Positions 38,411 to 58,810 of a stretch of 64,000 bases of DNA are shown here, in pieces. The DNA comes from Asterias rubens (taxonomy: Eukaryota), in NCBI RefSeq assembly GCF_902459465.1, contig NC_047068.1, positions 10,664,001 through 10,728,000 of the forward strand. The letters are read 5' to 3'. Within the stretch, counting starts at the first letter, position 1, and each line of letters opens with the position of its first letter. The notes under the pieces were generated by a model. It had not been told where the DNA came from. It was given only the letters and a program-made list of their open reading frames with translations, and did not search any database. The position numbers were made by a program, and so were the translations under genes.

Positions 38411-39143
38411 ATACTTATATAACAGTATTTCATCCAGCATGGAAAAAGACAGGCCTTTAATTCCTAAGACTTGCAAGAAATATTTATTTCCAAAAAACTT
38501 TTGGTTTAACTGATTCAATCTTGCCTTTTATGACGATGGTACCCCCATGGTGTTTTTGTTGTTGAGAATCAGACAAAGAATTAAAATAAGGGGGAAAATG
38601 TGGAAAAGTTTGAAGGAAAAACAGCAGCCTAGGGATTGCTCTAAAGTGAACTAGAAGAACAATCCCTGTAAAAAAATCTAAAATAACAAAAATGATTCCA
38701 ATGCCGAGAACAATGTAAGCAGCCATTCGATCGATTGAAATCTTGGTATGTCAGATAAATATACGAAGGTCCCTGGTAACACAAGTATCCCAGGTAAAGG
38801 GTAGAGTGCATTTGATTCCAGTGCCTATTGTCCCTGTTTGTAGTCGACGCCATGAAACAGGATACACTTTTCATAATTGTGGTGAATGCTAACAATGAAC
38901 CTGCCTAGCGAGTCAACAAATCATCTGCTGTTAAAACTCATCCAGCACAGGAATGCATCTTTTTATAAAGTCTCCAATCATGAATCCTTATGTATCTTAA
39001 CACAGAATCCAGCATTTAGTGGTTAAACAATTATTCATAAAGTTTAATAGACTTGTTATCTCATCATCATCTATTGACGTTATCAATTTTATATCAAAAA
39101 ACACAAAAGGAAATTTACAATCTCGTCTTTTCATTTGTTACAG

Positions 39144-42089
39144 AAATCAGAGAAAGCAAAGAGAGCCCGTTCTTACGTCCAGAGGAAATTGGCCGAGCAG
39201 GTGCAACTCAGTTCAGCCTCCCCCTCATGTACGCATACATTCAGTAGAAGAACTGAGCCCAAAACAGACACCACAACCGATGAACCGCTGCAAGATGAGA
39301 AGGCGAGAGATGGACGAGATGAAAGTCTTGAAGAGAGAGATTTCAAGTCTGTGTTGGCCACAAAACGTCGCCAGAGACAGAGGAGGAGCGTTTCTTTCAT
39401 TATTCCCAAGGAGACTCCATCTGAGAGAGACTCTCCTGACAACGGTGAGGTAGAGAAGAAAGAAGGCCATCTTGGAGATGCGGTGATAAAGAAGCAGGAG
39501 GAGCAACTTGAATCCAGAAGCAAGAGATCTTCTCTTCCTGAGCTGGCACATGCATTCGTAATGGAGGAGTCAAATGACATTAAGGTGTCAACGGTTTCAA
39601 AGGCCTCATTAATAAACGACACCTTGGGAGACTTTAAAGGAAGCACCCACACCAGGAGAGAGAACAGAGTTAGGTCCAACGAGAATATGGTTCTCATTGT
39701 ACCAGAATCACAACTTATAGAATCTGTAGGAGAAGGTTGCCCTGAGAGGGATGTCACTCCAGTAACTCTTGCTGTGTCGCATCCTCAGAACAATTCAAGA
39801 ATCAAAGCAGAGGGCAAGCTGGATCTTGACCTATCTTCTAAAAAGTTTGACAAAGACACCAAAAAGTCTACCAACATTTCGCCACTTCAAGAAGACACTC
39901 ACTACCCAAGCAATAACAACAACAACAACAACACAAACAAAATGAATGAGAAAATAGAGACCACTGAGACCGCCCTAAAGCCACCTCAAGTTGGGATAAA
40001 GAAAAGGAGAGCCAGTCGACGCAGTCTGAAAAGTTCCAGGAAACCACGTGAGCTGACTGCATCTGACATCAGCATGAAAGAGGTAGTGAAATCGCAGAGC
40101 ACAGAAGAGGGTAGTCATACCTGGATCGAGGGGCTGATGTATCCGGTGGAGTATTACGTCAGACGTACTAGAAGCATGAGCTCCAGTCAGAGCTCTCAAT
40201 GTCAGAGTCACTCGAACTCCCAAAGATACATGGACAGAAATGATTCACAAAGGGACATGGATACTCAACTGAGAACGATGGAGCAAACAGACTCTCTAAC
40301 AGATTCTACTAGATCTAAAGATTCAGTACCTCAAGCGACCACGGTAAAAGCAGCTTGTGTGCTTCAATCTGAAGTGAGCAGGAATCAACTGGAAGTAAGC
40401 CAATGTCAAATTGAACCTTGCAAGAATCTAGCAGGCACTTCCAACTTTCCCCCAATGTCGGACTCGGATTCCTTGAGATCTCAACTCTCAGAGTCTCTCC
40501 TGAAGACCTCTCTGCCAAAACCTGCAGGAAACAGACGAGACAACGATCAGGGGAAACTGTCCTGGCAAACAAAACCCAGGAAGCTTCAAAGACGGAGAGT
40601 TATTTGGAAAGGGAGTTCAAGAGCATCTTTATCAAAGAACAGCACTGACGCTCAGATCACTTTCACACCCAACCCTGAGGATAGTAAATCAAACTCTGGC
40701 CATACCGCTTCGATGCGAGAACCTCAATCATCCAGCAACACTCCGGACCTCTGTTCAGGATCTACAACAGATGATTTAAGATTAAACCCTGATTTAAGAT
40801 TAAACCCTGATACTGAAGATCACCAGAGAACAGAATCCCAACATGAACTCAATGCAGGAAGTATTCTCCACTCTCTGAGAAATCTCAGGTTGCCATGTTC
40901 AGATTTTGCTCTGCCTGACGAAGACTTTGGTACCTTGAAGGAAGCCAAATTGAAAACTCTACCAGAAGCTGGTGAAGTAGCAACATATACTTGTGAAGAC
41001 GGCAATAAGAAATTCCGTTCATCCCTACCATTGGAAAGGGAGAAAGTTAACGCCAACACATACAAAAGCGACGTCATTGACGAAAGCATCCCAGCTGAAC
41101 ACCATCAGAAAAACTTCAATGACCAATTAGTCTTAGGCCTATCACAAACAACTCAGGGTGTTTTAGTCTCAGTAACTGATGTAGTCTCAGTAACTCAGGA
41201 TGATGTAACCCCAGTAACTCATGATCATCCCATTCAAAAGCCATACCACAGCGACAAAAACATCACTGAAAACTCCACACCTGAAATGTTGCTTCCCTTG
41301 GACGACATTAATTCAGTCAAACCCCCTCTTGATTCAAGGTCTTCTGCCAGATCGTGTATCGATGGAAAGATCCAACCTGACAGTTTCCCTGTCGTAGAGT
41401 CTCCCGATAAGAACGTTCTCCACAGCCAGTTCTCGCTGACCCAGTTTCACGACAGCTGTAGCTTGGCGCTCCCGAGCGCTGGATGTACTCCAGGTTTGTC
41501 ACCAAGTTGCTCTAGAGACGATATTGACCAGGTCATCTTGACTAAAAATGTCTCACCCTCTCTTCAGGACGTAGAAAAGGCAGCTGAAGGTGAAGATTTG
41601 GACGACGGAGACCAAAAATTGGATTCATGTCTCGATGAAGGAGGGGCTGGAAGCTCATATTTACAACCTTCAGTTACTTCCCCACTCGAAGCTACCAATC
41701 GTAACTCTAGAAGCAACCAACAACAACATACTGTGTTTGTTTACCCAAACCAAACCACAAGTTCGAAGGATGGCTCAACCGACTGCTCCATTCTATCGAA
41801 AGCAGTATCAAATGAGACCGGTAACCTATCGGCTGGGGATCAACCAACAAGTGGTGTCAACGAGGGAACAAACAATGGTAGCATAACACCGCCGACAGTC
41901 CACCCAGAAGCTGTCTCTAGCAACATCCAACAAAAGTCCCCCTTTGCGGGCGGAGCTACGGGGAGTCCTTTTGGGAGGGCTGAGGAGCCTAAAGCGATGT
42001 CCCAGTGCGAGGTGGAGGTACTTAGTGAGGACAATGAGGCAGAGGAGAGGGTTACCAGACCTAATCTAGCTTCAATTGGATGCTTGAAG
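39144..42089 (+). CDS. PALB2: PALB2 giant exon (982 aa): end of coiled coil, ChAM, MRG15-binding motif, disordered linker
   Basis: ORF 39135-42098. Acceptor ttacAG, donor AAG|GTACAC. ChAM at about 40126-40182, DFALPDEDFG at 40902-40931. Confidence 0.92.
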
Positions 42090-42410
42090 GTACACTGACT
42101 ATTATTGAATTCTGACAATCTTCGGTTACAATCCGGCCAAAGCTGGTTATTTGTCGTTTTGAGATGAAAGACAGAGTGTGAATTATTTTTTTAGAAAGGA
42201 TTCCCTTTGGGGTAATAATAGTTTGAATAATTTGTTCTCCCCAAAGCTTTGACAAATACAGTTGTATATTTTGCGAAACAAATTCCAACACGCGGCTGAC
42301 GTGAACGTATACAGTTATCATATCCGTATCTGTGTCCGCACGCTTGCGAAACCTCTCTAATGATGCAGGGCAAAGACTTAAACCGTACATCCAACATTTA
42401 TCCTACTCAG

Positions 42411-42584
42411 CTTGATCTTCCATGGGAGCAGTCACCCGCCCTCAGGGATATAACAAGCGGTGTGGTGAACCTAGATGAAGAGACAAGTATTCTGGCCCTC
42501 GTTTACCAATGCACACTAGTTTTCTGGCTGTATTACGGAGGCACACAAGAGTGGAAGATGCTACAGGCTTGGGTTATACCTCAG
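42411..42584 (+). CDS. PALB2: PALB2 WD40 exon (LDLPWEQ...EWKMLQAWVIPQ)
   Basis: actcAG ... CAG|GTAAGG, 174 nt. Confidence 0.85.
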
Positions 42585-43161
42585 GTAAGGTGATATGGCC
42601 AAGGAATATGTTGCTAAGCAAAATACAGGTTACCAGCCAAGATACCATGTAATGTGTATTGCTTGTGCCTGGTTCCCTGTAAAATTTTGCTAAGTAGAAA
42701 CAGGTTACTGGTCAAATTACCATGTAATGTATTCTGTTTGTGACTGGTTCCCCGTAAATTTTTGCTAAGCAGAAGCACAATTTTGTTGTTGTCAAACAGC
42801 TTTATAAACTTGGGCCCTGTTTGTGCACACTTATGAAAAAAAAGCCACAGAGACAGAAACAACAGGCCATTAAATATTTTGCGCAACTATAAAAAAGACA
42901 CATAAACATTCCAAATTCCTCCAAAAAAGGAGTAGGTGTCTCACATACCACACAGGAAAATTCTGTATTGTTAAAGCGCCTTGAGCGTCGCTGAGTAAGG
43001 GTTATGCGCGTTATATAAGAAGCCAATATTATTATTATTATTATTAATAATAATGATCAGTATCCTGGTGTAAACCGAGAAAGGTGTTAAAGATTTTGGT
43101 TGATTTAAATTGGGACAAACCACTCATTTGATTATTTTTTTTTGTAATTATACATTTTTAG

Positions 43162-43256
43162 GATGAGGAGTTCATCTTGTTGAAGTTTTTGTCGTGCAGT
43201 AAACAGAACGAAGTGACTTTGGTTGTCGCCGGGAAATTTGCCTCTTGCGCTCTCAG
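43162..43256 (+). CDS. PALB2: PALB2 WD40 exon (DEEFILLKFLSC...SCALR)
   Basis: ttttAG ... AG|GTATGA, 95 nt, ends in phase 2. Confidence 0.8.
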
Positions 43257-43339
43257 GTATGATCTACTTAAAACACATCTTCGATATTTTGTTTCATCTT
43301 GTTCTTTAAGATATACGGATAAAAGTTAAGCTCTGTGAA

Positions 43340-43611
43340 CAGTTTGTCGTCGAAGTTGTAAGAGAATAATGACAGAAAAAACACCCTTGTTGCACAAGTT
43401 TGTGTGCTTTCAGATGCCTAGAAAAGGCTTCAGGCCTGAAGTCTGTTAATGATTGAATGAGAAATTAACTCTTTCTCAAAAACTACGTTACTTCAGAGGG
43501 AGCAGTTTCTTACAATGTTTTATACCATCAACAGCTCTCGATTGCTTATTAACAGGTCAGTTTTTATGCTAACAATTATTTTTGAGTAATTACCAATAGT
43601 GTCCAGTGCCT
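43340..43611 (-). mobile_element. TTAA-type MITE family A, partial
   Basis: Ends TAATTACCAATAGTGTCCAGTGCCT-TTAA. Confidence 0.8.
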
Positions 43612-43644
43612 TTAATGCTAACCTATTGTGGAAAAACAATTTAA

Positions 43645-44120
43645 AAAAATTAAGTGTGAACCTATCCCAGTTATTTAACGGTTTAGTTCCTCAACTTCAT
43701 TGTAAACTGTAGTTACAGCAATAACTGGTGGTTTCTTGTGTGATATTGACACGCAGCGCATTAATAACATCTATGAGTTGGATGTGAACCTATGCCAGTC
43801 ATTTGACAACCAAGTGCCTCAACTCCAATGTAGTAAAACCAATAATTGGTGTTTTCTCATATGATATTGACATATGTAGTACACACCAAAGTTAAATATA
43901 TGAGTTAAATGTGAACCTATTCCAGTCGCTTGATGTTTAAGTGCCTAATACCTTCAGTGTAGTAATATTAAAAAATTGGTGTGCATGTTGTTTCGTGTAG
44001 GATATTGACATGTACCACATTGACAGAAAATCTGATTTGAATTCGAACCTCTCCCAGTCATTTGATGATCAAGTGCCTCACCTTTGATGTTTCATTAGCA
44101 ATGCCCTGATTTGACTCTAA
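43645..44120 (+). pseudogene. Tandem decayed copies of the acceptor and 5' part of PALB2 exon 44151-44333
   Basis: GATATTGAC at 43742, 43863, 44001 and 44151 (real exon). GTGAACCT at 43656, 43784, 43911 and 44197 (real exon). Confidence 0.75.
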
Positions 44121-44150
44121 CTGGTGTGTGTGTGTGTGGTTTCTGTGTAG

Positions 44151-44333
44151 GATATTGACATTTGACACATTGACGGAGGACTGTCAGCAGTTGGATGTGA
44201 ACCTGCCGCAGTCAGTGGAGGCTCAGATGCCTTATCTTCTATGTCCTACTAGTGAACAGGATTTCATTGTTGCAGTCAAGGATGTCAAGAATAAGACCAC
44301 TGTGTTTTCCGTCCAAGTTTCCACAGAATCAAG
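44151..44333 (+). CDS. PALB2: PALB2 WD40 exon (ILTFDTLTEDCQQLDVNLP...STESR)
   Basis: gtgtAG ... AG|GTGAAC, 183 nt, phase 2 to 2. Confidence 0.82.
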
Positions 44334-44505
44334 GTGAACAGACTTCCCCTACTGATACCCCCCCCCTAATTTCACACTTGTCTTTTTTTATGGGGGGGGG
44401 GGGTCTAGTTTGCCGATTTATATTTTAAGAATAATACAAAGAACTTAAATTAGTGCTTTATTACACGTGCATTTATCAAAGCACTCAATTTTTTTTTTTT
44501 TTCAG

Positions 44506-44625
44506 GGATGTGCATTTAGTCGAATTAGCCACTGGATCCAGCAGGGAGTTGACATCATTACTGAAAGTTGAAGAAACTGCCGGGATTGTCATGGCAACCA
44601 CATCAAGTAATCACATACTTTTATG
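44506..44625 (+). CDS. PALB2: PALB2 WD40 exon (DVHLVELA...TTSSNHILLW)
   Basis: Poly-T cAG ... TG|GTAAGA, 120 nt. Aligns to human LLGTTIMNNIVIW. Confidence 0.87.
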
Positions 44626-44929
44626 GTAAGAACACCACATATTGTTTTGGTTGACACCTTTGCTGTTTGAGGGCAGTTTGGGGTCCTGTGACGTCACATG
44701 CAAGAGGTCTAATCACCCCTTGCGCTGTCAGCCATTTTTGTGTATAAAAAAAACTAGAATTGCAGACAGCAGTGAATAGGAAGATTATATAACTCTGTGT
44801 TGTCACAGACATCACACTTGATTGTATATTAGTTTGAATTAAAAAATAATTGATATATTTTAGTATTTAGTAACATTCTGCTCCTTCAGAGACAAAATTC
44901 CAAGCCCGATATTTGGTGAACAGCAATGA

Positions 44930-45260
44930 CAACTATTGATTGGTATTTACTTAAAATAATTGTTGCCATAAAAACTTACTTGGTAATGAGCAACAGAGAG
45001 CTGTCGATAGTATAAAGCATTGTGAGAAATGGCTCCCTCTGAAGTAACGTAGTTTTTGACTCAAATATTAAAAAACTTCATTATGCATCTGGAAGCACAC
45101 AAAGTTATGTAACAAGGGTGTTTTTTCATTCATTATTCTCTCGCAATTTCAATGACCAATTGAGTCAAAATTTTCACAGGTTTGTTTAAGTTATGCATAT
45201 GTTTGGATACACCAAGTGATATTACTGGTCTTTGACAACAACCAATTGTGTCCAGTGCCT
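44930..45260 (+). mobile_element. TTAA-type MITE family A, partial
   Basis: Shared internal GCTCCCTCTGAAGTAAC; ends GTGTCCAGTGCCT. Confidence 0.8.
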
Positions 45261-45283
45261 TAAAGAAATCTGTTATTTTGAAG

Positions 45284-45377
45284 GTGTCTGAAGACAGATC
45301 AGCTGCTTAAAGAAGTCCTGATCAAACCAGTGACAAATGGAAGCCGTGTGTCGTGTTTGGAAGCAGTTGCTGAAGCG
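45284..45377 (+). CDS. PALB2: PALB2 WD40 exon (CLKTDQLLKEV...AVAEA)
   Basis: tttgaAG ... GCG|GTAAGC, 94 nt. Aligns to human NLKTGQLLKKM. Confidence 0.87.
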
Positions 45378-45394
45378 GTAAGCACTGATTCTAA

Positions 45395-45558
45395 CAGGCC
45401 TGATACTTCACGGAGGCAACGAAGGCGATTGCCTCCGTTGCCTTGGTGTCCTTGACATGCTCTGATAGAAATGAACAATGTCCTCATAGGGTGCCCTTTA
45501 CCAAGTAAAAAAATGCCTTGGTGCCCTTGCACTTTTAAAAACGAAGCCTGCAGGCCTG
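45395..45558 (+). mobile_element. Short hAT-like element (CAGGCCTG termini)
   Basis: Flanks TTCTAA/TTCTTA. Same terminal sequence as the element ending at 4807. Confidence 0.7.
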
Positions 45559-46097
45559 TTCTTATAAATGGGTACCCCTGAGGGTACATGCCACGGCAGC
45601 TCGGGGCTGTTTACTCTCCAGGGAGCTGAGAAAGATTGGCCCGATGACCAAGAGCATCAGATCTACCTGACTAAATCCGGGTTCATACTTCCTGGGAACA
45701 TATATGTGATACGAATTTTGATGTAAATATTCGCACAAATAGTTCGCATCTACTCCTGCGAAACCTTCACTGTAAAACAGCCATGTGACGTCATAATTTG
45801 CTTTAGTATTCTGACAATGAGTAAAATTGAAAGGAGTTTCTCAATTTACCAAAATATTTTTGACCGCATGAGGGCGCTTTCATCAACGAATGGTCTTGCA
45901 TCACAATTTAAGGGTTTCATCTTATTTTAATTGCCTGTTTGAGTTTTCTTGCATCAGTGAACAAAAAACATAAACATGGACTGCGATGTTTGAATGTTTA
46001 CTTAACCAACAATAATAATAATTAATAATAATTGAAACTGGTCGGCGAATTCCTGCAAAATAAAATGCCATATTTCTTTCTCCATACATCTCTTTAG

Positions 46098-46255
46098 GGT
46101 TTGTTATTTCTAATTCTTGTGTACCAAGAGGACAACAGTGATTTAGAAGTAAAGTGTAACAGCAGCATTGGTGCTATGGTAGCGTTCAACCCACACACGA
46201 ACAAGATGCTGAAATTGATGGACTACAACGTCCCGAATCAACATAAAAATGCCAG
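46098..46255 (+). CDS. PALB2: PALB2 WD40 exon (GLLFLILV...AFNPHTNK...KNAR)
   Basis: ctttAG ... AG|GTATGG, 158 nt. Aligns to human GLLFIVLS...VINPKT. Confidence 0.88.
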
Positions 46256-46399
46256 GTATGGTGATGTACTGGTAACATTCTGTTTCTAGAATGTTCTTTA
46301 ATAATTTGGGGGGGGGGGCTAATCATCCTTACTCGCAGCTAAGAGCTGAATTGCGAAGGACGCGGCTACAACGTGTTCGAGAAGCTGGCATGCAAGGGC

Positions 46400-46625
46400 G
46401 CCTTTGGCTGCCAGCCACATCAACCCATTATGACCACGGAGCACAGCCAAAGATCGAAAGTGTTTGATTTTTTTTTCCAAGGGAGGAAAACCGTATGGTA
46501 TGGAAAACCCTCGTGGCACAGCAGAGAACCAACGCACAACTCAACTCACATATGGCCCGGCCGGGAAACGAACCAGGGTCACCTTGGTGAGAGGCGAGCA
46601 CTTTACGCACAAGCCAGCCATCTTA
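46400..46625 (-). mobile_element. tRNA-derived SINE with V/Meta-like central domain
   Basis: tRNA-like head with GGTTCGTTTCCC, then GTGAGTTGAG...GGTTCTC...GAGGGTTTT...CGGTTTTCCTCCC. Confidence 0.6.
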
Positions 46626-46978
46626 TATGGGATTTGAGGCATTGCATGGCGAGGTATCAATACATATTTGGTTTGCGCTAACACCATGTGTGTATCTACT
46701 TGCCAGGTAGATAGTAACTACTGACTGAAATCGACCGGGACTACTACTTTCGCCGATTATTTAGTGGATCAAGGGGACTTTTAACTTCAATATCATCACT
46801 CAACATTTCAACAAGCCTGGTCTGCATATTCACAGTATTTTTATGTCCACAAATCAACATCAAGTTATCCTCGTTAAGTTGCCGAACACGATTGCAACGG
46901 GTAACAGACTAGAAATAGGAATCAGAAGAGCAGACCACCTTTAAAACATTACAATTATTTTGTCTCTTTTTGTTTCAG

Positions 46979-47183
46979 TCTTGTAGATGGGGTTTTATAC
47001 AACGCCACTCTCATGGCCAAACTGTCTGATGGCAGCCTCCACCAATTGGAGACCTCCACAGGGAACCTACTGAATTATTTATCAGGCAATCCAACCAATC
47101 AAAGCCTCTGGAGTGCCCAACTCTGCAATTCACAGGTGGTCTTAATTGGAACTGCCCAACACCTGGAGATGTATAATGAATAA
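46979..47183 (+). CDS. PALB2: PALB2 last coding exon (LVDGVLYNATLMAKLSDGSL...HLEMYNE*)
   Basis: tttcAG, 205 nt to TAA. Similar in length and hydrophobic pattern to the human last exon. Confidence 0.82.
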
Positions 47184-49249
47184 TTCATGAGTGTACTGGC
47201 CAATACATGGAGATGTATAAAATGAATATCCATGAGCGGGAGGCGGCTGCACATTCAATACACAAGTCTTGTTTTGTTTACACAAAGAAATGACAAAAAC
47301 TCCAAAATGCAAAGAGACTCATTTTTGTTCAAGTTTAATTAGAATCAGAATATCATATTATAATTTGTTTCTTTATGCACAATGAAATCACCATTCTTTA
47401 TATACCTATCACTACCTAGAAGCTGATGAAAGTATCATTTTCACAAGTATGCATGACAACGAAATAGAACACATCAGGGAGTCAAAACACATGTTTTTCT
47501 CTCCAAGCAAAACAACATCCAGATTTTATATCATGTAAAATGATAGCACTTTTATTCGCCAGCTTGTAACCTGTGAGAATCCAGGCCGTATCCGAATAGG
47601 CGACTATAGCTACGGCTACGGCTGTTGCTAAGTGTGTTGCTAAGGACGTCCTATACTTCAAAGCATGTTGACGTAGAAATCAAGCTGTAGCCTTAGCTGT
47701 AGCCGCTACTTGGGACCACAGCCTTATTTTCAAGATGGCAGCCTCCAATTCAGTTCACAATAACAGTGCATCGTCATGCACAACTGACATTATATATTCT
47801 AACTTGTTCAATCATCTTTAACCAGTTTATTTTTTTCTTTTCAACTAGCCTAAACATAGAATCTTCTTCGTGGTATCAAAAATAATTTTTAAGATTAAAC
47901 AATAATTTCATATTTTGTTGATTTATGTGACTCACTCTTTTAACAAATAATTTACAAGCTCTCCGTCTTTCATGATGTCGATTGATTTGAAATGTGTTTT
48001 CAATTGGGCAATCTCCAGCAAACGCTGGTCTCCCAAATGGACGTAAAAGCCCAACTTGGAATTCCACCAAATTAAAGATGCATCCTTGTAAAAATCATAC
48101 TAAACAGTCCCAATGTGAAATTCATAAATGGACAAATCTCAAACTTAAAAATATCTATAACTATTGTAAGCATAGAATATTAAAATAATTAAATCCAAAA
48201 TATAAACAACCCAGTAAATATACTCCTTCATATTTATTTAATTTACAGCACTTACTTTAGATCCGCAACCAACTCCGACCAAAGCCGTACACAGAAGAAA
48301 AAAAATTAGAACTTCAAGATATGTATCGTTAAATATTGTAGAAATTTGTGGTATAATTTTTCAATAATTATTATACACTTTCTAAAACTGCAGAGGCGAA
48401 TAAAAAAGTCTAAATCCTAACGATGCTATATTTGTTATTTATTGGTATAATCTTTTATACACATTCATGGATATAAATGAAGAAGTAACTTTTTCTATCG
48501 AGCTACAGACAATCTTAAATGGTTTCGACAACCACAGGCATGCATTGAAAGAAAGTGCAGATTTTATACAAAGCCTTTACGTATATAATTGTTGTCTGTA
48601 TACGTACAAATGTACAACACCTCCCCAACCCTAAACCAAATCAGAAGAAAAAAACTCAAACGGAAATGTGAAAATACTCCATGGCATAAAGAGGGAACAT
48701 TTGACTTTGAGGAGAAACTTATACCAAGTAAATCAGCCAATTCCTATGTTTAACACAAAGAAACCTTTTCAACTTAAAAGCTGGTCCTAAGTATAAGAGC
48801 AGGTTACAGAGTTGGAGAACCAGAACAAAATGGTTGCTTACATACCGTGAAATCAGAATTTGCTCTTTTAGGTATAAATATGATGAAGAGAAAAGAGTAC
48901 ATGTACTAGGGTCAAACTCTGCACGTTTATGTAGGCTGGTAAATGCATAGAATTACAGCAGTACTGTACTACATGTTGATATATATTATTCAATGAGATT
49001 AGCCATGGCTCACACATACAAGTGTTAATACACCTGCAACAACTGCAACTTTTATTTTTGCAACAGCTCCCATTGGTTTTGTACACGTTTTCCAACTGTG
49101 GACCTTTCCGGAACCGTGGACCCTATTGTCCTCTTTTGCTATAGGTTCCCGGTTTGAATGTGTATACCTACTATGTGCACTTTGTGGGGCATTTATAAAC
49201 AAACTATCCCAAAACAGGATATACTTCTACCGTGATTGGGAGTCTTAAT

Positions 49250-49373
49250 GCCGTGTTTGAAATGGTGATAACTTCAGCTACAGGTAAAGCTAGATCCGCG
49301 CGTCTGCACGTGTTGAAGAATAGACAGATGAGCTGGATTTAGCCGTAGCCAAAGTCACCGTTTCAGACACGGC
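49250..49373. mobile_element. Harbinger-like palindromic MITE
   Basis: TIR GCCGTGTTTGAAATGGTGA / TCACCGTTTCAGACACGGC. A more decayed relative lies at about 47583-47723. Confidence 0.6.
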
Positions 49374-52179
49374 TATCTCCCAATGTGGATATCAGTGGCT
49401 ATCAATGAAGAGTAAACAATCAAACTACCCCAATTGGGTGATTTCTACCCCAATTGAAACTGTTTTCTACCAATCAGGGTATTTTGTGACATCACCAATG
49501 GTAAAATCAAGATTAAAATGATTAATGAGTACTGAAACCGCACAAAATATAGCCCTGTATTGAAGTCAATAATACTCAACAGAAAAGTTCTTGAAAAAAA
49601 TAAATTGATAAAGAATACATCCCAAAAATAAATGTCTAGACTTTAGAAACTTGAAACCCTGATGTGGAAAAAAAGGAATAATAATCTGTTGGAGGAAGAT
49701 GCCTCGCATTTTTTAAAGAAATACTGGACATTCTAAAAGAATACTTCAAGATGCACTGAAAAACAAACCCCAGCAAAAGCCAATAAGTTTAGTCACAATT
49801 TTAGTTTCTATAATTCGTTAGGTCAGCGCCGTAAGGTTTATTGTCCGTTATGATTAAAAGATCGTTAAACTAAAAATGTGTTTCAGTTTGTAAACAACTA
49901 AGGGAATAAAATCCACAAATGAAAATGATTTTTTTGCGCCAAACATTGTCTTTGGAGACTACTCTTGGTCAATAGACTCCATTACCCAGGAGCTCCAGAA
50001 TATAGTTTTATGAAATCCACACAGACTGCACCAACAAACTTTACGCCCCGAGCCGACAAATTGTTATATTGTATGCAAAGAAATACATTGCAATGGAAAA
50101 CATTTTTTTGTAATTTTTCCTTCAGTTTTATAGTGAACTAAAAGTTGCATTAAATTTTTCGCAAAGCCATCTTATACAATCTAAACTTTTGCTAAGATTA
50201 AAAACTCACATTTTTCAATGGCTTGAATGTTAAGATTGAGAGAACAACAAAAACCATTCCCTTGCCAAAAAAGCTAACTAAATGAGGAACAAGTGAATTT
50301 GTCTTCACTGGAGGATAAAGAAGTACAAAGATTAAAACTGATTTGTTTTTGTCTCTTACAAATCAATATTAGATTAAGGCCTTTTGAAACAAAAACAGGG
50401 CGAGAGCAATTTTGAAATAATGTTGTTTTTTCTTCTTCTTCTATTTGGTAGAAAACTAATTTGCAAGACAGTAAAATATAAGAAGTTAGCAAAATATATT
50501 GTGCACTGTGAAAAAAACTACTTCTATCTTTCAAGCTAAACAGCTGATGGTACGACTACCCTTGTATCTCTTTACGATGATTATTTAAAAACAAGTTTAA
50601 AGATACCCGATAAAATGCCTTTATGAAAATGTGGAATCCTTAAAATTATCTTTCCGCATATCCAATATTTTTAGTTTTGAACTGTTTAATTCATGCATTA
50701 GATCTAAATAAAACAATACTTGGTTTCTTTCAAACGGCCTATTTTGCTCTCATGACAGTTTAGAAATGGCTCAAGGCTATACGCCTAGTAATAAGGTGGA
50801 TGACAAATTGCACTGTGACTAGTGAAAGTATTGCGATTTATTGTGTAGCTGTTTTGTGATAAATAGTTTCAATTGTTCTTATCTGGTTTTAAATGAAGAA
50901 CTTGTTGACAACAACCACATAGAAAAGGGGATTTGATATTTTTACATTTTATGTGCAATACGGGTCCAGGTTTCTATATGTTTAAAAGGATTACAGAAAA
51001 ATGTTTCCCCTCTTAGACTTTGCTAAATCATAAACAGTTTTGTTTATCTTTCGGTTTTAATGAACTGTACAGTAACCTATCTATCAGAGGTTAATATTTA
51101 CAAAGTGCACTGAACTTTTAAAAATGGAATGTGAAAAAATGTTCGTACAGAATAAAATTGACATTTTGATGGTCTCTAGGCTTCTAGTAAAAACACAGAA
51201 TTCTGATTTGCAAAATGTGACAAAATCTAGGAAACCTAAACATAGTGCTTCTCTGAAATAAAACTAAAAAGGTGATGTGTTGATTGCAATAATGACACTA
51301 CTCATCATGTTATTAACTTCTATAGATTATCTTTTTTTTATGATGTAAAATTTCAGATTTTCAGAATACAAATAATTTCAAAAAAAGTTTGATAAAGATA
51401 GTTTTTTACTTGATATCACACAGTGTAAAGTCAGCCATCTTTACAACCAATGATTATCATTTATTCAATGCACAACTTTGGGTCATTTATATTGTGTTTT
51501 GCACACTGAAGTTTTATTGAATTCCTTGTACGATTGGTCAGTTAACCACTTGGTCTCATGGAAAATTAGAAACATAGCGCACAAATACTAAAGTTGAAAT
51601 GAGGACATCATTCATGCCAAGTCAACGGAACCATAAGAAAATGGCTGTGGCCACTCTGTTAATTTGTTCAAATTAGAACGCTTGACTCAGCTCAAAGCCA
51701 AAATCCAAGTAAAGATGGTATGTATACCTGGAACTTTCTACAGTGACTGTCCCACATGTGTCACGAACAGAAAAACTGACAGACAAAATGCATCAAACGA
51801 ACAGATTAATTAGCTGGATGTCCTTACAGTGTAATAGAGTTTAGACAAAGAAACAGTCACACGCATTGTACATTACATGGTACTTTGGCTGGTAACCAGT
51901 TTCCTGCAAAGTATTCTTAAACTGCCTTTAGCAAATTTGTTCACCTTGCAACTTTTTCTGAAAAAAAATTAACAAATTATCTGCCCTTCGACTGAAGAAA
52001 TCGCCACTTTCTCTGCGCATCACATTATAGACAGATTAATTTGGACAAGAGGAAACACTGTTTTTTCTGCTTTTTTTGTCTTCTCTTTTTTTTGGGAGGA
52101 GGGGGGGGGGTGTTTATTGGACAGAATTATAGATCTAGACTTGAGACTTACCACAACGCACCTATAGTGCTAACGCACC

Positions 52180-52329
52180 CTAACGAGTGATAAAATTAGG
52201 ATTGGTGTAAGTGAACCCGTCAAACTCTGTTTGATCCAAATTCATGATGAACAATTTGTCGGTCGGGGTTAACACTGGTTCCTCTCGAGTGAACTCCTTG
52301 TCGAAGTTACTGGTGTCTTGGGATCCTTT
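52180..52329 (-). CDS. PRKCB: Classical PKC distal alternative C-terminal (V5) exon, betaI-type: KGSQDTSNFDKEFTREEPVLTPTDKLFIMNLDQTEFDGFTYTNPNFITR*
   Basis: Acceptor aatgcAG at 52330-52331, phase 0, 150 nt. Has turn motif LTPT and hydrophobic motif FDGFTY. Confidence 0.92.
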   Translation of the reverse strand, partial: KGSQDTSNFDKEFTREEPVLTPTDKLFIMNLDQTEFDGFTYTNPNFITR

Positions 52330-55300
52330 CTGCATTGTGGAGGGCACCAGGGAATAAAAGACAAGCGGTGACGGACAGTGAAGGGGAAAATTGATGACGA
52401 AGACAAGGGGTGTGGCATTATTTGAAAAAAACAAGAGGGCGGGATTGAGGTGAAAAGATAAAGCATAAAAGCATTATTTACAGACCATAATTTTCCTAGA
52501 TATATGTCCATATGTTATATATAAAATGAGTAGGGTAGATGGTCTTAGCTTTCGATCCAAACCGACCTTCTCCAATAATGATGATATGTTTAAAATAACA
52601 CAATCTAACCAAACTAAAATCATATACAATTAAAATGTTTTGCTGGTGTCTGGAAAGGGTGTCAAAATTTGCAATTTAAATCTGTGTTCACTTCAAACAC
52701 ACCTAAAAAAACACACATAAAGGATACCTAGAGCACCCTCTTTGACGTGAATAACTTTGAACAAGTAATCCTGAAAGAAATTCTACCTTACATATATAAC
52801 CTCTCCCTCTCTATGCTACTGTCTTGGTCGCCCTGCTTCAATATTATTTTGGCTGTAACAAACAACATTTTCTCCACCCTCTTCCTTTAACGTTCCAGCT
52901 TTGAGAAATATTGAATGCTTTTGTACTGATGAAATAATTACATTTTTTGTTCTTGGTGGAGTGAATAAGTCCGCTCAATGAAATTAGGTTTTCTTGAAGG
53001 ACTATTCAATGACTAAATTTATGGTCTTGTTTCAGAGATAGTCCGGTTGATTAGTTTAATTTAAATCTTAAAAAGATCAATTAGTATAAAGATAGCACTG
53101 GTACCAACTCCCCTGAAAATTTTAATTTCTGTCTCAAAAATTCACTTTCTTGGTCTTTGCCGAGGAAATTCTTGATTTTATACTTGGTGGTTGGAATAAA
53201 AATCTTCACCTAAACCAATAGTCTCTCAAAAATAGTACTGGTGGAGTTTTACAAAACATATTTCATATTTTACACAATTATTAGATATCTGGTAGTTTGG
53301 TTTGTTATTATAATTAATCTATTTTTAGAGTATTTTTTTGGCGAGTATCATTTCTTGCACAACAAATTTTTATTTTCTCACAATTTATATAATCATATAA
53401 AATAAAACGCAATTGAAATCGGTGGTGAATTAAAAAGTATGATGGTTTCAATTTGTTTGTAACAAAAATTCAAAAATTTTCATTGGTCTTCAACTTATAC
53501 TGGCATAATAAATAAAGACAGTACTGTTTAGACTCAATCAAATCACACTTATTTTCTGAACCAATTTTTGCATACGAGAGAAAACCTTGACGTACCAAAA
53601 TTTCTTTTTTCTACCACAATATTGAAGGACTTTTCAATATTACAGATTTGAAATAATTGATTTTAGGTCAAAATCCCAAACAGCAAAGCTCCAATTTCCT
53701 TCGCCTCAGTTCTGATAATTGAAAAATATTACTGCACTATCATGTACTGTGGGATTAATTTTGAGCCATAAAAAAAAAAATAGATAATGCCAGACAGCGC
53801 AAGACTTTGCACAGTGCTGTCAAATTTGTAATGGCATAGCTAAGAACTCAAAAACGAGAATTGTATGCCTAAATTATTTAAAGGTGATTTTAGAGTTGTG
53901 CTATGGTGTATGGATTTTACTTTGCATATATTATTTCACAGCAAACATTAAAGCTTCAGAAAGTATGCATAAAAATTGTAAAAAATTGCTCCTTACTTCT
54001 GAAATTTTACCTAGAGTACTGATGCGGAAAAAAAGATAAAAAAAGAGGGGAGGAGGGGAACTAAAAATGACATGACATCAGTTCACAGTCAAACCATGCA
54101 TGGATCATTCCAACACACTGGATCTGGTTAAGCTGACGTAAAGTAAATTCCTGTCAAGCCATCCAGGCATACATAATTTCATGGGAATACTAATACGGCA
54201 AAATTGAAGCCAAAAGTCTGTAGCCAAAAGGCAGCCATGTTGCCACTCACTTTTAGTTGCACTTTGAGCACGAATACATGAGAGGACATTTGGAGTGCGT
54301 TTTGGCGACCGCAACCAGAAACATTGGTCATCGGTTGAGCGTTTTTGCTGCGTGTTCGGTTGAGCGCGGTGATGATGCTGTTCAAACCAACTGGTAACCG
54401 ACTTGTTGAGTCAATTGATTGGGAGACAGGGAACCAAATCAAATTACTATTGAGCTGACAACACTCTTTTGTTTCTGTAGGGAGTGGGAAAATGGCGCAA
54501 AAGGAGTGGTAAAATGGCGCAAGTGAAGTGGTAAAAAGGTGGCTTCACCGGTCAATTTAACAGAGTCCAATGTGTCATACCGTGCAATTATTACATGCCA
54601 TGCAGTCCAATCAAATAACAAAACAAGTTAACAGATCAAATAAACGACTTATTCCCTCATTTTCGGCCACGTTTAGAATTGAACAATCGTCCTGCATGGC
54701 TAAACACTCAGCCAAATAATAATTTCAGTTAATGATTTCAATGATTTCAGTGACACAAAATACTCGTGGATGAAGAGATCAAACCATGATTTTAAACTGA
54801 CAGAAATTAAAAAAAAACACAGATTAAATATTCTCGCAAATTACATTCAAAATTTACCCGTTACAAAATATGCAGTGAACCACTAGTAAAAAAAGTTCTG
54901 CTCTAATATAGCTACTGATGGCTGTTTGTATATAAGACTAGTTTAAAAAGCTATAGAAAACCATTGGTGATAAAAGCAACTCTGGTATCCTGATTTAAGG
55001 CCTAATAAAAAGCACTAAATAGCAAGGGGGACCATGCTACAAGTTGCAAGCAAAGCAGAAAGATCAAACAGGCGTTTTCCAAACTTTGGGTAAACTTATC
55101 TGGCTCCATGCTCGACTTATGCAGCACTGTACAAAATGCACACTGCTCTAAAATTGAAGCCTGAGCCTAAGCCAAGATTTTGAAAAACTTGGGGTTGGTC
55201 TGATGGGTGCACTTTTATTTGATTTTAAACTCAATAGATTTTGGTATAGTTCCGAAAATTCTTCACGGTTTACTTTGTTTCCCATCTTCTAGACTTAATT

Positions 55301-55855
55301 AAATGTGTCATACAAAGTGTTCTCTGAAATATGAATATTAACCTTAGAAAACACCGAGATCATGTTTTTCCTGGATCAAAATAAGTATAGAAATTTTTTT
55401 TTTCCAAAATTGGTCAAAAAAAGTTTGATAGTTTTGACTGCACTGTAATAACCCTTTCAACCAACTTTACCTCAACCTACTGGGTTTGAAAGGTAGAGCC
55501 ATTCACTTCTTATTTGCATCTTGAAATAAAATAGTTTTTTAGCGACTCGCAACAAACCAAAACGCACATTTTGAAACTTCCTTTCTCAGAGTTGCAACAT
55601 ACAACCACAACAAGTCCAGTTACGCCAGAATAAATTGTCTCAAATAACACATCAACAACACCCTTATCAATCCCTTCACGCAATTGCGGCATGGTTCCCC
55701 TTCCGTACTCAAAAAACAAACAATGCAGCACTACGAAACAATGGTACACAACAAAAATATATAGGGTTTCTACGATACAAACAACAGAGGAAATGACAGC
55801 TTCTTGGAGAGGGTAAGCGCATGGATAAGGCTCCCCGACCACCACACTACGTTTG

Positions 55856-55999
55856 TCACTGGAAATAAGGGTTGACATAGCTGAATCCGGCGAAATCGTC
55901 TTCGTTCAGAGCTCGGATAATCATTTGGTCAGTCGGGGTCAGGGTCACCGGGTTGTTGGTGAAATAGGGGTCAAAATTTTCAGCGGCTCTGGAGGATTT
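55856..55999 (-). CDS. PRKCB: Classical PKC proximal alternative C-terminal (V5) exon, betaII/alpha-type: KSSRAAENFDPYFTNNPVTLTPTDQMIIRALNEDDFAGFSYVNPYFQ*
   Basis: Acceptor ctttccgacAG at 56000-56001, phase 0, 144 nt. Has turn motif LTPT and hydrophobic motif FAGFSY. Confidence 0.92.
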   Translation of the reverse strand, partial: KSSRAAENFDPYFTNNPVTLTPTDQMIIRALNEDDFAGFSYVNPYFQ

Positions 56000-58027
56000 C
56001 TGTCGGAAAGAAAAAGTGGGGAAAAGAAAAAGGGAAAAAGCACAAATAGGGGAGGTGGTAAAAACAATATCGGGGTACCAGTACACTACTACATATAGTT
56101 GGTGGGTTAGCATGGGGACCAGCTTGTGCTCTACAAACTAATGGGTGATGGTAGGTTGACATAGTCAGGGGCTGAAGATACAGAACCCACTTTCATAGAA
56201 CTCTTTTTAAGGAGTAAAAAAATACTCTGCTAAGCATAACTTAGCACGACACCATAATACAGATTAGAATACACTACTTTGGCCAGTAATTTGTTCTATA
56301 GTAAGCATTGTACTTCAACGAGCCTTTTATTAAATTGGGCATGTATCATAAAGCAGTTTCCTTTCCATTCGGTTTGGAGGTTTTCCTTTTTAAAAACTTG
56401 TTTTCTTGGACATTTGTCATCTTGCCCCGAGTTTATCAAATAATGGTGAATTCATATATGTCGTCTTAATTTGTTTGATTTTGTCAGCAAAGTTCTAAAC
56501 TTCTGAAGTTTGACCTTTCATTAAAATGAGGGTCAACCAAAAACTGTATCGAAACCGCGCAAACGTGTATCCTTTATCTATTAATGACATAGACATACTT
56601 TCAAAGAGTTTGACAAAGTGTGTGTGTATCTTCAGCCCTTGAGGGTATACAAACTCTACATGGGCAAAGTCATGCATTATTTCACAACACGTTTCTCAGA
56701 TTTACCAATTTACTCGACAATTTCAAAAAAAAATACAGTGCAGTAACTTTACCCATGTACTATTGGAAATGCTTCTGTATATTAAGATACCGGACACCAG
56801 GGGAAAATACACAGGTTTAATTGCTGAAAGGACGGGGAGCCGCTTTAACACTGGGGGAAGGAGGGCAGGGTGGGTGGTGATGTCTAATCTATGATTACAA
56901 ATCAACGACGAGGGGGTGAGATAATGGGATTCTATAAAATGAAACAGGATTACAAGGTGGGCTGATTTCTTATGACTATTTGATCCAGGAGGCAGGCATA
57001 GTAGTCAGTGGATTAAAATTAAATATCTACAAACGAGAGGCGTTTAACAACATGTAGTAATGGAAAGCAACGATAACTATGTCTGTTGCATTGCAATTGT
57101 GAAAAATGGAGAGAAAAGTGATGAGATTTGTTGTTTCAAACTGAGAAGTGTTGGACGCTACCCTTTTTTGTTGGGGGGGGGGGGGTATTTGTCAGACATT
57201 TCAAAACAAGCCTGTAAATGCTTCTTTAATAATCCCGCATTGGTTTGCTCTGTATCTATTACATTATTTTTTTTTTTTCATTTTATTATTCATGAATTAT
57301 TTTCTTGATCTGTCCTTGACTGTCTTTGACTTAAATAATTAAACAAAAATCAAGAGCTGTTTCCTAGCACTGTGTGCCAAAACGGCTTTATTTACTCAAC
57401 TCGTTTCTATGAAAACAATATTAGGTTAAGAGAGATTGAGAAAATAGAATTAGTTGTCGGAAACAACTTACCAACCAAAAAGACCAATGGTATTAATGCA
57501 AAAAATAGTTTAAGGCATTGCAGAGTGTTTATTTAAGGCTGATAGAAGCCATAAAGACTCAGCAAGGGTTGACACTTTGTGACATTAACTATTTTTGGTA
57601 TGGAAGAGATTGGGGTAGATTTTTCCCTAAGTTCTGTGGAAAGTATGGCATGAATTTGGCTCCAAAGAGCTGCCTTGTTTTTTTGTTTTTTTTTCCCGTT
57701 AATTAATCTGTAGAATCATTTACTTCATGAGCTACATCCACAAGTCTTAATAATGTACAATGCAACAGACTAAGTTATAATATGACTTAATTCCACACTT
57801 CATGTTGATACAAGTCTCTGTGACTAATTACTTATTGGACTCAAGCGCATGCATTCCTTCATTATTAAAAAGCATCCTCTTTAGCGTAATTTGAAATTAA
57901 GAAAATGAGCTGCTAACTTCACAATGTTTGGTAAAGTGAACAACTTTGAAAATGAAAATCAACGAGGAAAGTGAAGAATTGCTTTCAAAACAAACATTTC
58001 TACAGAAACAAATCTTTCTAAGGAAGT

Positions 58028-58384
58028 NNNNNNNNNNNNNNNNNNNNNNNNNNNNNNNNNNNNNNNNNNNNNNNNNNNNNNNNNNNNNNNNNNNNNNNNN
58101 NNNNNNNNNNNNNNNNNNNNNNNNNNNNNNNNNNNNNNNNNNNNNNNNNNNNNNNNNNNNNNNNNNNNNNNNNNNNNNNNNNNNNNNNNNNNNNNNNNNN
58201 NNNNNNNNNNNNNNNNNNNNNNNNNNNNNNNNNNNNNNNNNNNNNNNNNNNNNNNNNNNNNNNNNNNNNNNNNNNNNNNNNNNNNNNNNNNNNNNNNNNN
58301 NNNNNNNNNNNNNNNNNNNNNNNNNNNNNNNNNNNNNNNNNNNNNNNNNNNNNNNNNNNNNNNNNNNNNNNNNNNNNNNNNNNN
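58028..58384. other. Assembly gap (357 N)
   Basis: Run of N. Confidence 1.
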
Positions 58385-58672
58385 AACTGTGAAATGAAAA
58401 CCCAGTTACCACGGACTAAGAGGAGTTACAAAGTGCCATGAACAAAATACACTGAGTGACCACAGCAGAGTGAAATCAAGTTTTCGCTATCCCAGGACGC
58501 AAAAACAAAACTTGCTCACAATTTTGAATTTTGCCTGCCTGACATGTTTGTAGGTGAAAACAGAACTCCAAAATAAAAAACAAGAGTAGAAAACTGTAAA
58601 AAAAAAACGTTGCATAGAGAGACAGACAAACCAACAGACGGACGGACAAACCGACAGAGAGGATTCACTTAC

Positions 58673-58810
58673 AATTTTGGGGACAAAGGGAGGTTGGACC
58701 TCCCTGTTGACGAGCTTTCCCCAGTCGATACGACGAAAGAATGGATGCTCTTGAATATCCTTCTCAGCGTTGGCGCTTCCGAGCCTCTTAGCAGGGTGCT
58801 TGGTTAGAAA
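58673..58810 (-). CDS. PRKCB: Classical PKC exon ([11 protein letters not shown]...[10 protein letters not shown])
   Basis: ttggtAG ... ATT|GTAAGT, 138 nt, phase 0. Confidence 0.95.

Follow-up and report, generated by a model that had tools for sequence, protein, structure and literature searches.

Tandem type II-like and betaI-type terminal exons at the 3' end of a classical protein kinase C gene in the starfish Asterias rubens

The 3' end of the gene

The stretch of DNA analyzed here (the window) comprises 64,000 nucleotides (nt) from the starfish Asterias rubens (contig NC_047068.1, positions 10,664,001 to 10,728,000), and its minus strand carries the 3' part of a protein kinase C (PKC) gene ending in two alternative exons for the C-terminal V5 tail of the kinase. 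The last common coding exon (58673..58810, minus strand), located by tblastn with vertebrate classical PKC (cPKC) and by direct reading, ends ...PPFVPKI in phase 0 and is followed by a GTAAGT donor at 58672-58667. Behind this one donor lie two homologous terminal coding exons in tandem and in the same phase, 45% identical to each other. We refer to the proximal tail as the type II or AENFD-type tail, and to the distal one as the betaI-type tail.

The coding part of the proximal exon (55856..55999, minus strand) starts at 55999 after a long pyrimidine tract and a ...ccgacAG acceptor, reads KSSRAAENFDPYFTNNPVTLTPTDQMIIRALNEDDFAGFSYVNPYFQ, and ends with a TGA stop codon at 55858-55856. It contains the NFD motif, the turn motif LTPTD, and the hydrophobic motif FAGFSYVNP. 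The coding part of the distal exon (52180..52329, minus strand) starts at 52329 after a ...aatgcAG acceptor, reads KGSQDTSNFDKEFTREEPVLTPTDKLFIMNLDQTEFDGFTYTNPNFITR, and ends with a TAG stop codon at 52182-52180; here the NFD motif is part of DTSNFDKEFTR…LTPTDKLFIMNLDQ, and the turn and hydrophobic motifs are LTPTD and FDGFTYTNP. Both exons were identified by direct reading, by the Pfam Pkinase_C profile, by an RNA contig, and by comparison with Asterias amurensis. A first-pass annotation made from the letters alone had proposed the coordinates, phase 0, acceptors, motifs and stops of both V5 exons, and all of these hold on the minus strand.

When the whole genome, an assembly of 417.6 Mb, was searched in six frames with Pkinase_C, the distal exon was the best match of the genome (56.4 bits, E 2.7e-12), and the proximal exon scored 37.8 bits (E 1.8e-6). 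A scan of 164 kb around the gene found these two V5-like open reading frames (ORFs) and no others. The V5 exon pair is not explained by chance. Both exons are also present in the A. amurensis locus beside the PALB2 gene, where the encoded protein is 100% identical to that of the window. Each V5 exon differs from its A. amurensis counterpart at 2 nucleotides, all of these differences being synonymous, compared with a divergence of approximately 6-7% in the flanking DNA. The annotated A. amurensis gene, which encodes a 662-aa protein with C1, C2 (PF00168) and kinase domains, ends exactly at the distal stop codon.

The kinase-domain exons of the PKC gene were located on the minus strand between 59916 and 62342 by tblastn and from the ORFs, with approximate matches to the vertebrate cPKC query at 62342-62148, 60773-60675 and 60029-59916. 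The C1, C2 and C1B exons are all upstream of these and outside the window: two calcium-type C2 exons are found by tblastn on the same strand beyond the window end, in the correct order and with 76-80% identity to vertebrate cPKC; a C1B-like exon was matched, also by tblastn and beyond the window end, at 76575-76450 in the coordinates of the extended region; and a Pfam C1_1 exon scoring 40.8 bits, above the cut-off, lies on the minus strand at 10791844-10791945 of the same contig. The gene thus has C1, a calcium-type C2 between C1 and kinase, and an AGC kinase with a Pkinase_C tail, and is at least 76 kb long. By its C1, calcium-type C2 and kinase exons it is a classical PKC.

RNA evidence at the two acceptors

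Four runs of RNA reads or contigs were mapped on positions 52000-57999, a stretch that ends before the common exon. Among these are a contig run from the species of the window (X1), a second Asterias contig run (X2), and raw RNA reads from the sister species (X20); the depth of the raw reads is low, approximately 1-8. Run X1 behaves as RNA, with zero depth from 56000 to about 57200 and a depth of 18-43 over the exons. The intron between the common donor and the proximal acceptor (56000..58672, minus strand) is without RNA depth in part: the depth is zero at 56200-56999 in all four runs, and zero from 56000 in X1 and X2. A run of N at about 58027-58385, which appears as X in the ORF translations, is located inside the same intron.

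At the proximal acceptor, an X1 contig of 1,671 nt matches the genome at 54355-55999 and then continues with 27 letters that are unmatched to the genome, so that the change falls exactly at the acceptor. The X1 contigs are unbroken from 55999 down to 52300 with depths of 18.6-27, and the raw reads of X20 cover the same 55999-52300 interval, but not the upstream intron. In none of the four runs on 52000-57999 was a splice joint found that leaves the proximal exon. A cassette mechanism, where the proximal exon is spliced on to the distal one, calls for a joint to 52329, and no such joint was found in the four runs, at a raw depth that leaves room for a rare cassette form. The type II isoform therefore appears to be made without a cassette splice, with approximately 3.7 kb, the distal exon included, kept as 3' untranslated region (3'UTR). 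As judged from the X1 contigs, the sequence 52330..55855 (minus strand) has a dual role, being 3'UTR in the mRNA with the proximal exon and part of the intron for the mRNA with the distal exon.

On the distal side, a 218-nt X1 contig with a depth of 43.3 has the exact coordinates 52112-52329 and ends at the acceptor, and the next X1 contig overlaps it by 30 nt and enters the intron at a depth of 27. The contig boundary at 52329 and the surplus of about 16 in depth would be expected if the common exon is spliced on at 52329.

The X1 contigs also show a shared 3'UTR past the distal stop (52000..52179, minus strand). It includes an AATAAA sequence near 52116, beyond which transcription extends, and a poly-C run near 52101-52111, where the contigs break. 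From 52077, an X1 contig of 2,932 nt with a depth of 52.6 extends to positions below 52000. It is probable that the PKC 3'UTR goes on for about 3 kb past the AATAAA at 52116, toward the PALB2 3' end (49100-52077, minus strand).

Three short segments of the PKC intron and 3'UTR (52517-52564, 54291-54412 and 57436-57479) reach an RNA or contig depth of hundreds to thousands in all four runs and show many loose ends and strand-switch joints. They look like a very abundant dispersed repeat, possibly with inverted-repeat structure.

Several observations weigh against the use of both tails and are shared with an explanation where only one tail is made and the other exon is a conserved relic, or an untranslated regulatory or 3'UTR element. 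No read or contig across 58673>55999 or 58673>52329 was seen directly for either acceptor, the mapped stretch excluding the common exon, and the 27 unmatched X1 letters at 55999 are known by count and not read as sequence. An X2 contig crosses 52329 unbroken, the distal splice is not detected in this run, and X2 has no depth on the proximal exon. The A. amurensis annotation shows one product, as only the longest product is retained in it. However, both exons have kept an open frame, the three functional motifs and an AG acceptor, and the differences between the two Asterias species are synonymous only, in both exons. The X1 sequence changes exactly at 55999, 52329 is precisely where the contig boundary and the depth step occur, and in A. 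amurensis the annotated coding sequence ends with the distal exon. Taken together we regard the production of a single tail as very improbable, and favor the use of both acceptors.

Relationship of the tails to those of other animals

The distal exon was used to search the full library, giving 632 tails, and the closest ones are the betaI-type tails of vertebrates, insects, nematodes and flatworms (among the latter Macrostomum and Spirometra). It is 72% identical to tetrapod betaI, with which it shares DTSNFDKEFTR and LTPTDKLFIMNLDQ, and 62-68% identical to protostome tails. Since the closest tails span vertebrates, insects, nematodes and flatworms, the betaI-type tail is, on these comparisons, the widespread form. 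The novel PKC tails of the genome itself read D-x-[SN]-N-F-D-x-[DE]-F-T, and as they share this pattern, part of the betaI signature would be ancestral.

A maximum likelihood tree of V5 exons was built from 47 columns, rooted on the novel PKC tails of the genome, in versions with 49 and 35 rows. The proximal exon is found in one clade with the complete set of 13 vertebrate tails of the betaII, alpha and gamma kinds (support 99/96 in the 49-row version and 91/97 in the 35-row version), and the distal exon in a betaI-type grade with insects, nematodes and flatworms. The first-pass annotation had reasoned that an independent duplication would bring the two exons together in a tree of V5 exons alone; this grouping was not obtained, and constraining the two Asterias exons to be sisters lowers the log-likelihood by 19.1 and 10.9 units. 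The proximal exon also carries type II-like residues, namely A6 and E7 before NFD, an aromatic residue at position 12 before FT, and Q26 after the D of the turn motif; the alignment adds I28 as a further type II-like residue, where type II tails have V.

A different origin for the pair would be convergent duplication, where the V5 exon was duplicated independently in echinoderms and the proximal copy drifted to become AENFD-like, so that the pair is not homologous to the vertebrate switch. Some of our own results speak for such an origin and at the same time against a common one. Under the approximately unbiased (AU) test, a tree that pairs the two Asterias exons is not rejected (p 0.157 and 0.0995). 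The branch leading to the proximal exon is long (0.84), the raw identities of this exon to the vertebrate forms are nearly even (52% to betaII, 50% to alpha, and 50% to betaI), and its turn motif has the betaI-like T and not the P of vertebrate type II tails (LTPTD compared with LTPPD). The tree was made without other invertebrate deuterostome loci to break the long branch, the published Acanthaster exons being absent from it. Precedents exist as well: Martinez-Gomez et al. (2021, Nucleic Acids Research), who traced human tandem duplicated exon events, reported convergent duplications in orthologous genes, with the ACOX1 event having evolved three times (PMC8373072), and a 2022 paper from the same authors lists PRKCB with Pkc53E and pkc-2, the fly and worm events, under a heading of convergent evolution (PMC9741552). 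Against convergence stand the best trees, where the proximal exon belongs to the vertebrate type II clade or is adjacent to it, with the support and the cost given above, the derived type II states which it shares (AENFD, the aromatic residue before FT, and DQ after the turn motif), and the exon order, phase and boundary, which are the same as in vertebrates; the starfish exons were also called equivalent in the published analysis (PMC8373072). We consider convergence unlikely. Orthology of the proximal exon with the vertebrate type II tails is the better-supported reading of these alignments, not proven by these data alone.

The distribution of the two exon types bears on when the type II exon arose. 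Like the Asterias gene, protostome cPKC genes (of the Pkc53E and pkc-2 types) have a betaI-type V5 exon, and the protostome loci sampled have that one only. The tail of Spodoptera and Musca reads KDVSNFDKQFT…LTPTDKLFMMNLDQ and that of Ancylostoma DVSNFDSEFT…LTPIDRLFLMNLDQ, both betaI-type, and the Asterias distal exon is 62-64% identical to these Spodoptera, Musca and Ancylostoma tails. The Spodoptera and Ancylostoma cPKC loci have a single V5 exon, with no second copy in the gene or in 10 kb downstream. Several read-through ORFs have an intron of tens of bases between the common and the betaI-type exon; in the fly-like ORF P0058, whose tail is the same as that of the Musca protein P0068, this intron is approximately 54 nt, too short for a type II exon to fit inside it. 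The tandem exon events that PMC9741552 lists for fly and worm were not located among the protostome loci sampled. A pan-bilaterian type II exon is thus not supported by the Spodoptera and Ancylostoma loci, and with protostome loci that lack the exon, an origin on the deuterostome stem fits at least as well as a bilaterian one.

With the proximal exon alone as query, the homologue search gave no candidate sharing three words. A distal-type exon that is 81% identical was found on a 21-kb contig (P0162). The orphan type II-like exons P0102, P0137 and P0073 were considered as further cases of the pair and set aside, their contigs of 641-1,703 bases being too short to show a partner exon. Two of them, P0102 and P0137 (contig positions 338-574 and 740-913), read ITENFDKYFT…LTPID…KNIDQ and group with the type II tails in the tree, more precisely with the alpha and gamma tails on a long branch. 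Type II features (ENFD, YFT and NIDQ) and a betaI-like F are combined in these two exons, which may represent a type II exon from an undescribed lineage. On a 641-base metagenome contig (positions 2-387), a PKC common exon is followed by an intron of about 80 bases and the V5 exon DTSNFDSDFTREKAVLTPPDKKLIASINQ; this tail is a hybrid of betaI and type II, with a basal position among the cPKC tails.

The PKC gene lies tail-to-tail with a PALB2 orthologue on the plus strand (39135-47200). A single-exon ORF of 987 aa (39135-42095, plus strand) is 90% identical to an A. amurensis protein carrying the PALB2 WD40 domain and 31% identical to the Acanthaster planci orthologue, and a weak PALB2_WD40 match is found at 46101-46286 within the same region. 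Upstream of PALB2 is a gene for a DEAD-box helicase, and the order is the same in A. amurensis. PALB2 was used as an anchor to reach the V5 exons of other echinoderms, and was given up for this purpose when no PKC V5 exon was found within the downstream flank examined at the Acanthaster and Amphiura PALB2 loci. In the human genome PALB2 and PRKCB are near neighbors on 16p12, and the adjacency of PALB2 and PKC may be an old linkage.

A putative acceptor switch and its age

The results above lead us to propose, with a probability of roughly 85%, that the 3' end of the Asterias classical PKC gene combines one donor with two homologous acceptors, which originate from a tandem duplication predating the echinoderm-chordate split. 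The locus would then be a single classical PKC gene in which the donor at 58673 can be joined to either acceptor. Joining to the proximal acceptor at 55999 would give a type II tail, with translation stopping at 55856 and everything downstream, including the distal exon, serving as 3'UTR. Joining to the distal acceptor at 52329 would remove the proximal exon within the intron and give a betaI-type tail. The choice between the acceptors is presumably regulated. Both tails retain the NFD motif, the turn-motif threonine and the phospho-acceptor of the hydrophobic motif, and on these grounds both are predicted to yield a mature and active kinase; the isoforms would be distinguished solely by the surface of their C-terminal arm, which may be the basis of a difference in function.

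In mammals, betaII is produced by inclusion of the betaII V5 exon, the stop codon of which renders the last (betaI) exon untranslated, and exclusion of the betaII exon gives betaI (PMC3537621). The Asterias gene resembles vertebrate PRKCB in having one common donor after ...PKx in phase 0, in the tandem homologous terminal exons with type II first and betaI-type last, and in that the stop of the first exon leaves the second untranslated when the first is used (order and stop as described in PMC3537621). In vertebrate PRKCB the betaII exon behaves as a cassette and is joined by splicing to the betaI exon, whereas the Asterias contigs are unbroken for about 3.5 kb from the proximal to the distal exon. 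With unbroken contigs and no joint leaving the proximal exon, the Asterias switch looks like a choice of two acceptors with a shared 3' end.

That the two-tail switch is older than the vertebrates is already published, and with a starfish example. Martinez-Gomez et al. found equivalent PRKCB exons in the crown-of-thorns starfish, with the exon-specific conserved residues given in their Figure 5B, and counted the PRKCB event among 21 that predate the vertebrate/invertebrate split (PMC8373072). Our case agrees with theirs in gene family, exon pair, class (Asteroidea) and the conclusion of an origin before that split; it differs in the genus, Asterias, and in the type of evidence, since the published analysis worked from annotation and protein conservation (PMC8373072). 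To this we add RNA contigs, the comparison of two Asterias species, a tree of the exons together with a formal AU test of the rival arrangement, and the unspliced 3'UTR of the proximal isoform, which, as read from the mapped contigs, seems to be a small new detail. The proposal of the first-pass annotation that the switch predates the vertebrate genome duplications is in agreement with the tree, the exon order and the published crown-of-thorns case, and its further reading, that the switch was ancestral and then lost in alpha and gamma and is not a PRKCB novelty, is supported and had likewise been published (PMC8373072).

A tentative extension, which we find possible but rather doubtful, is that the ancestral switch was a plain choice between two 3' splice sites with one long 3' end, that the vertebrate cassette with regulated 5' splice sites after the betaII exon came later, and that the type II exon is a deuterostome invention, which would narrow the published "bilaterian" dating. 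The last part is suggested because the moth, hookworm and fly-like loci sampled carry the betaI-type exon only.

Returning to the proposed old duplication of the V5 exon, it would have taken place before echinoderms and chordates separated, after which PRKCB kept both exons and PRKCA and PRKCG kept the type II exon only. As this conclusion has been published before, with a starfish among the examples, the main contribution of the window is to confirm it for a second genus of starfish, and what is added here is transcript-level detail on how the choice of tail is made. The switch between betaI and betaII alters the cellular location and the binding partners of PKC beta. If the switch is older than the vertebrates, PRKCA and PRKCG would each have lost one tail, rather than PRKCB having gained one, and the two tails would have distinct jobs that have been maintained for a long time.

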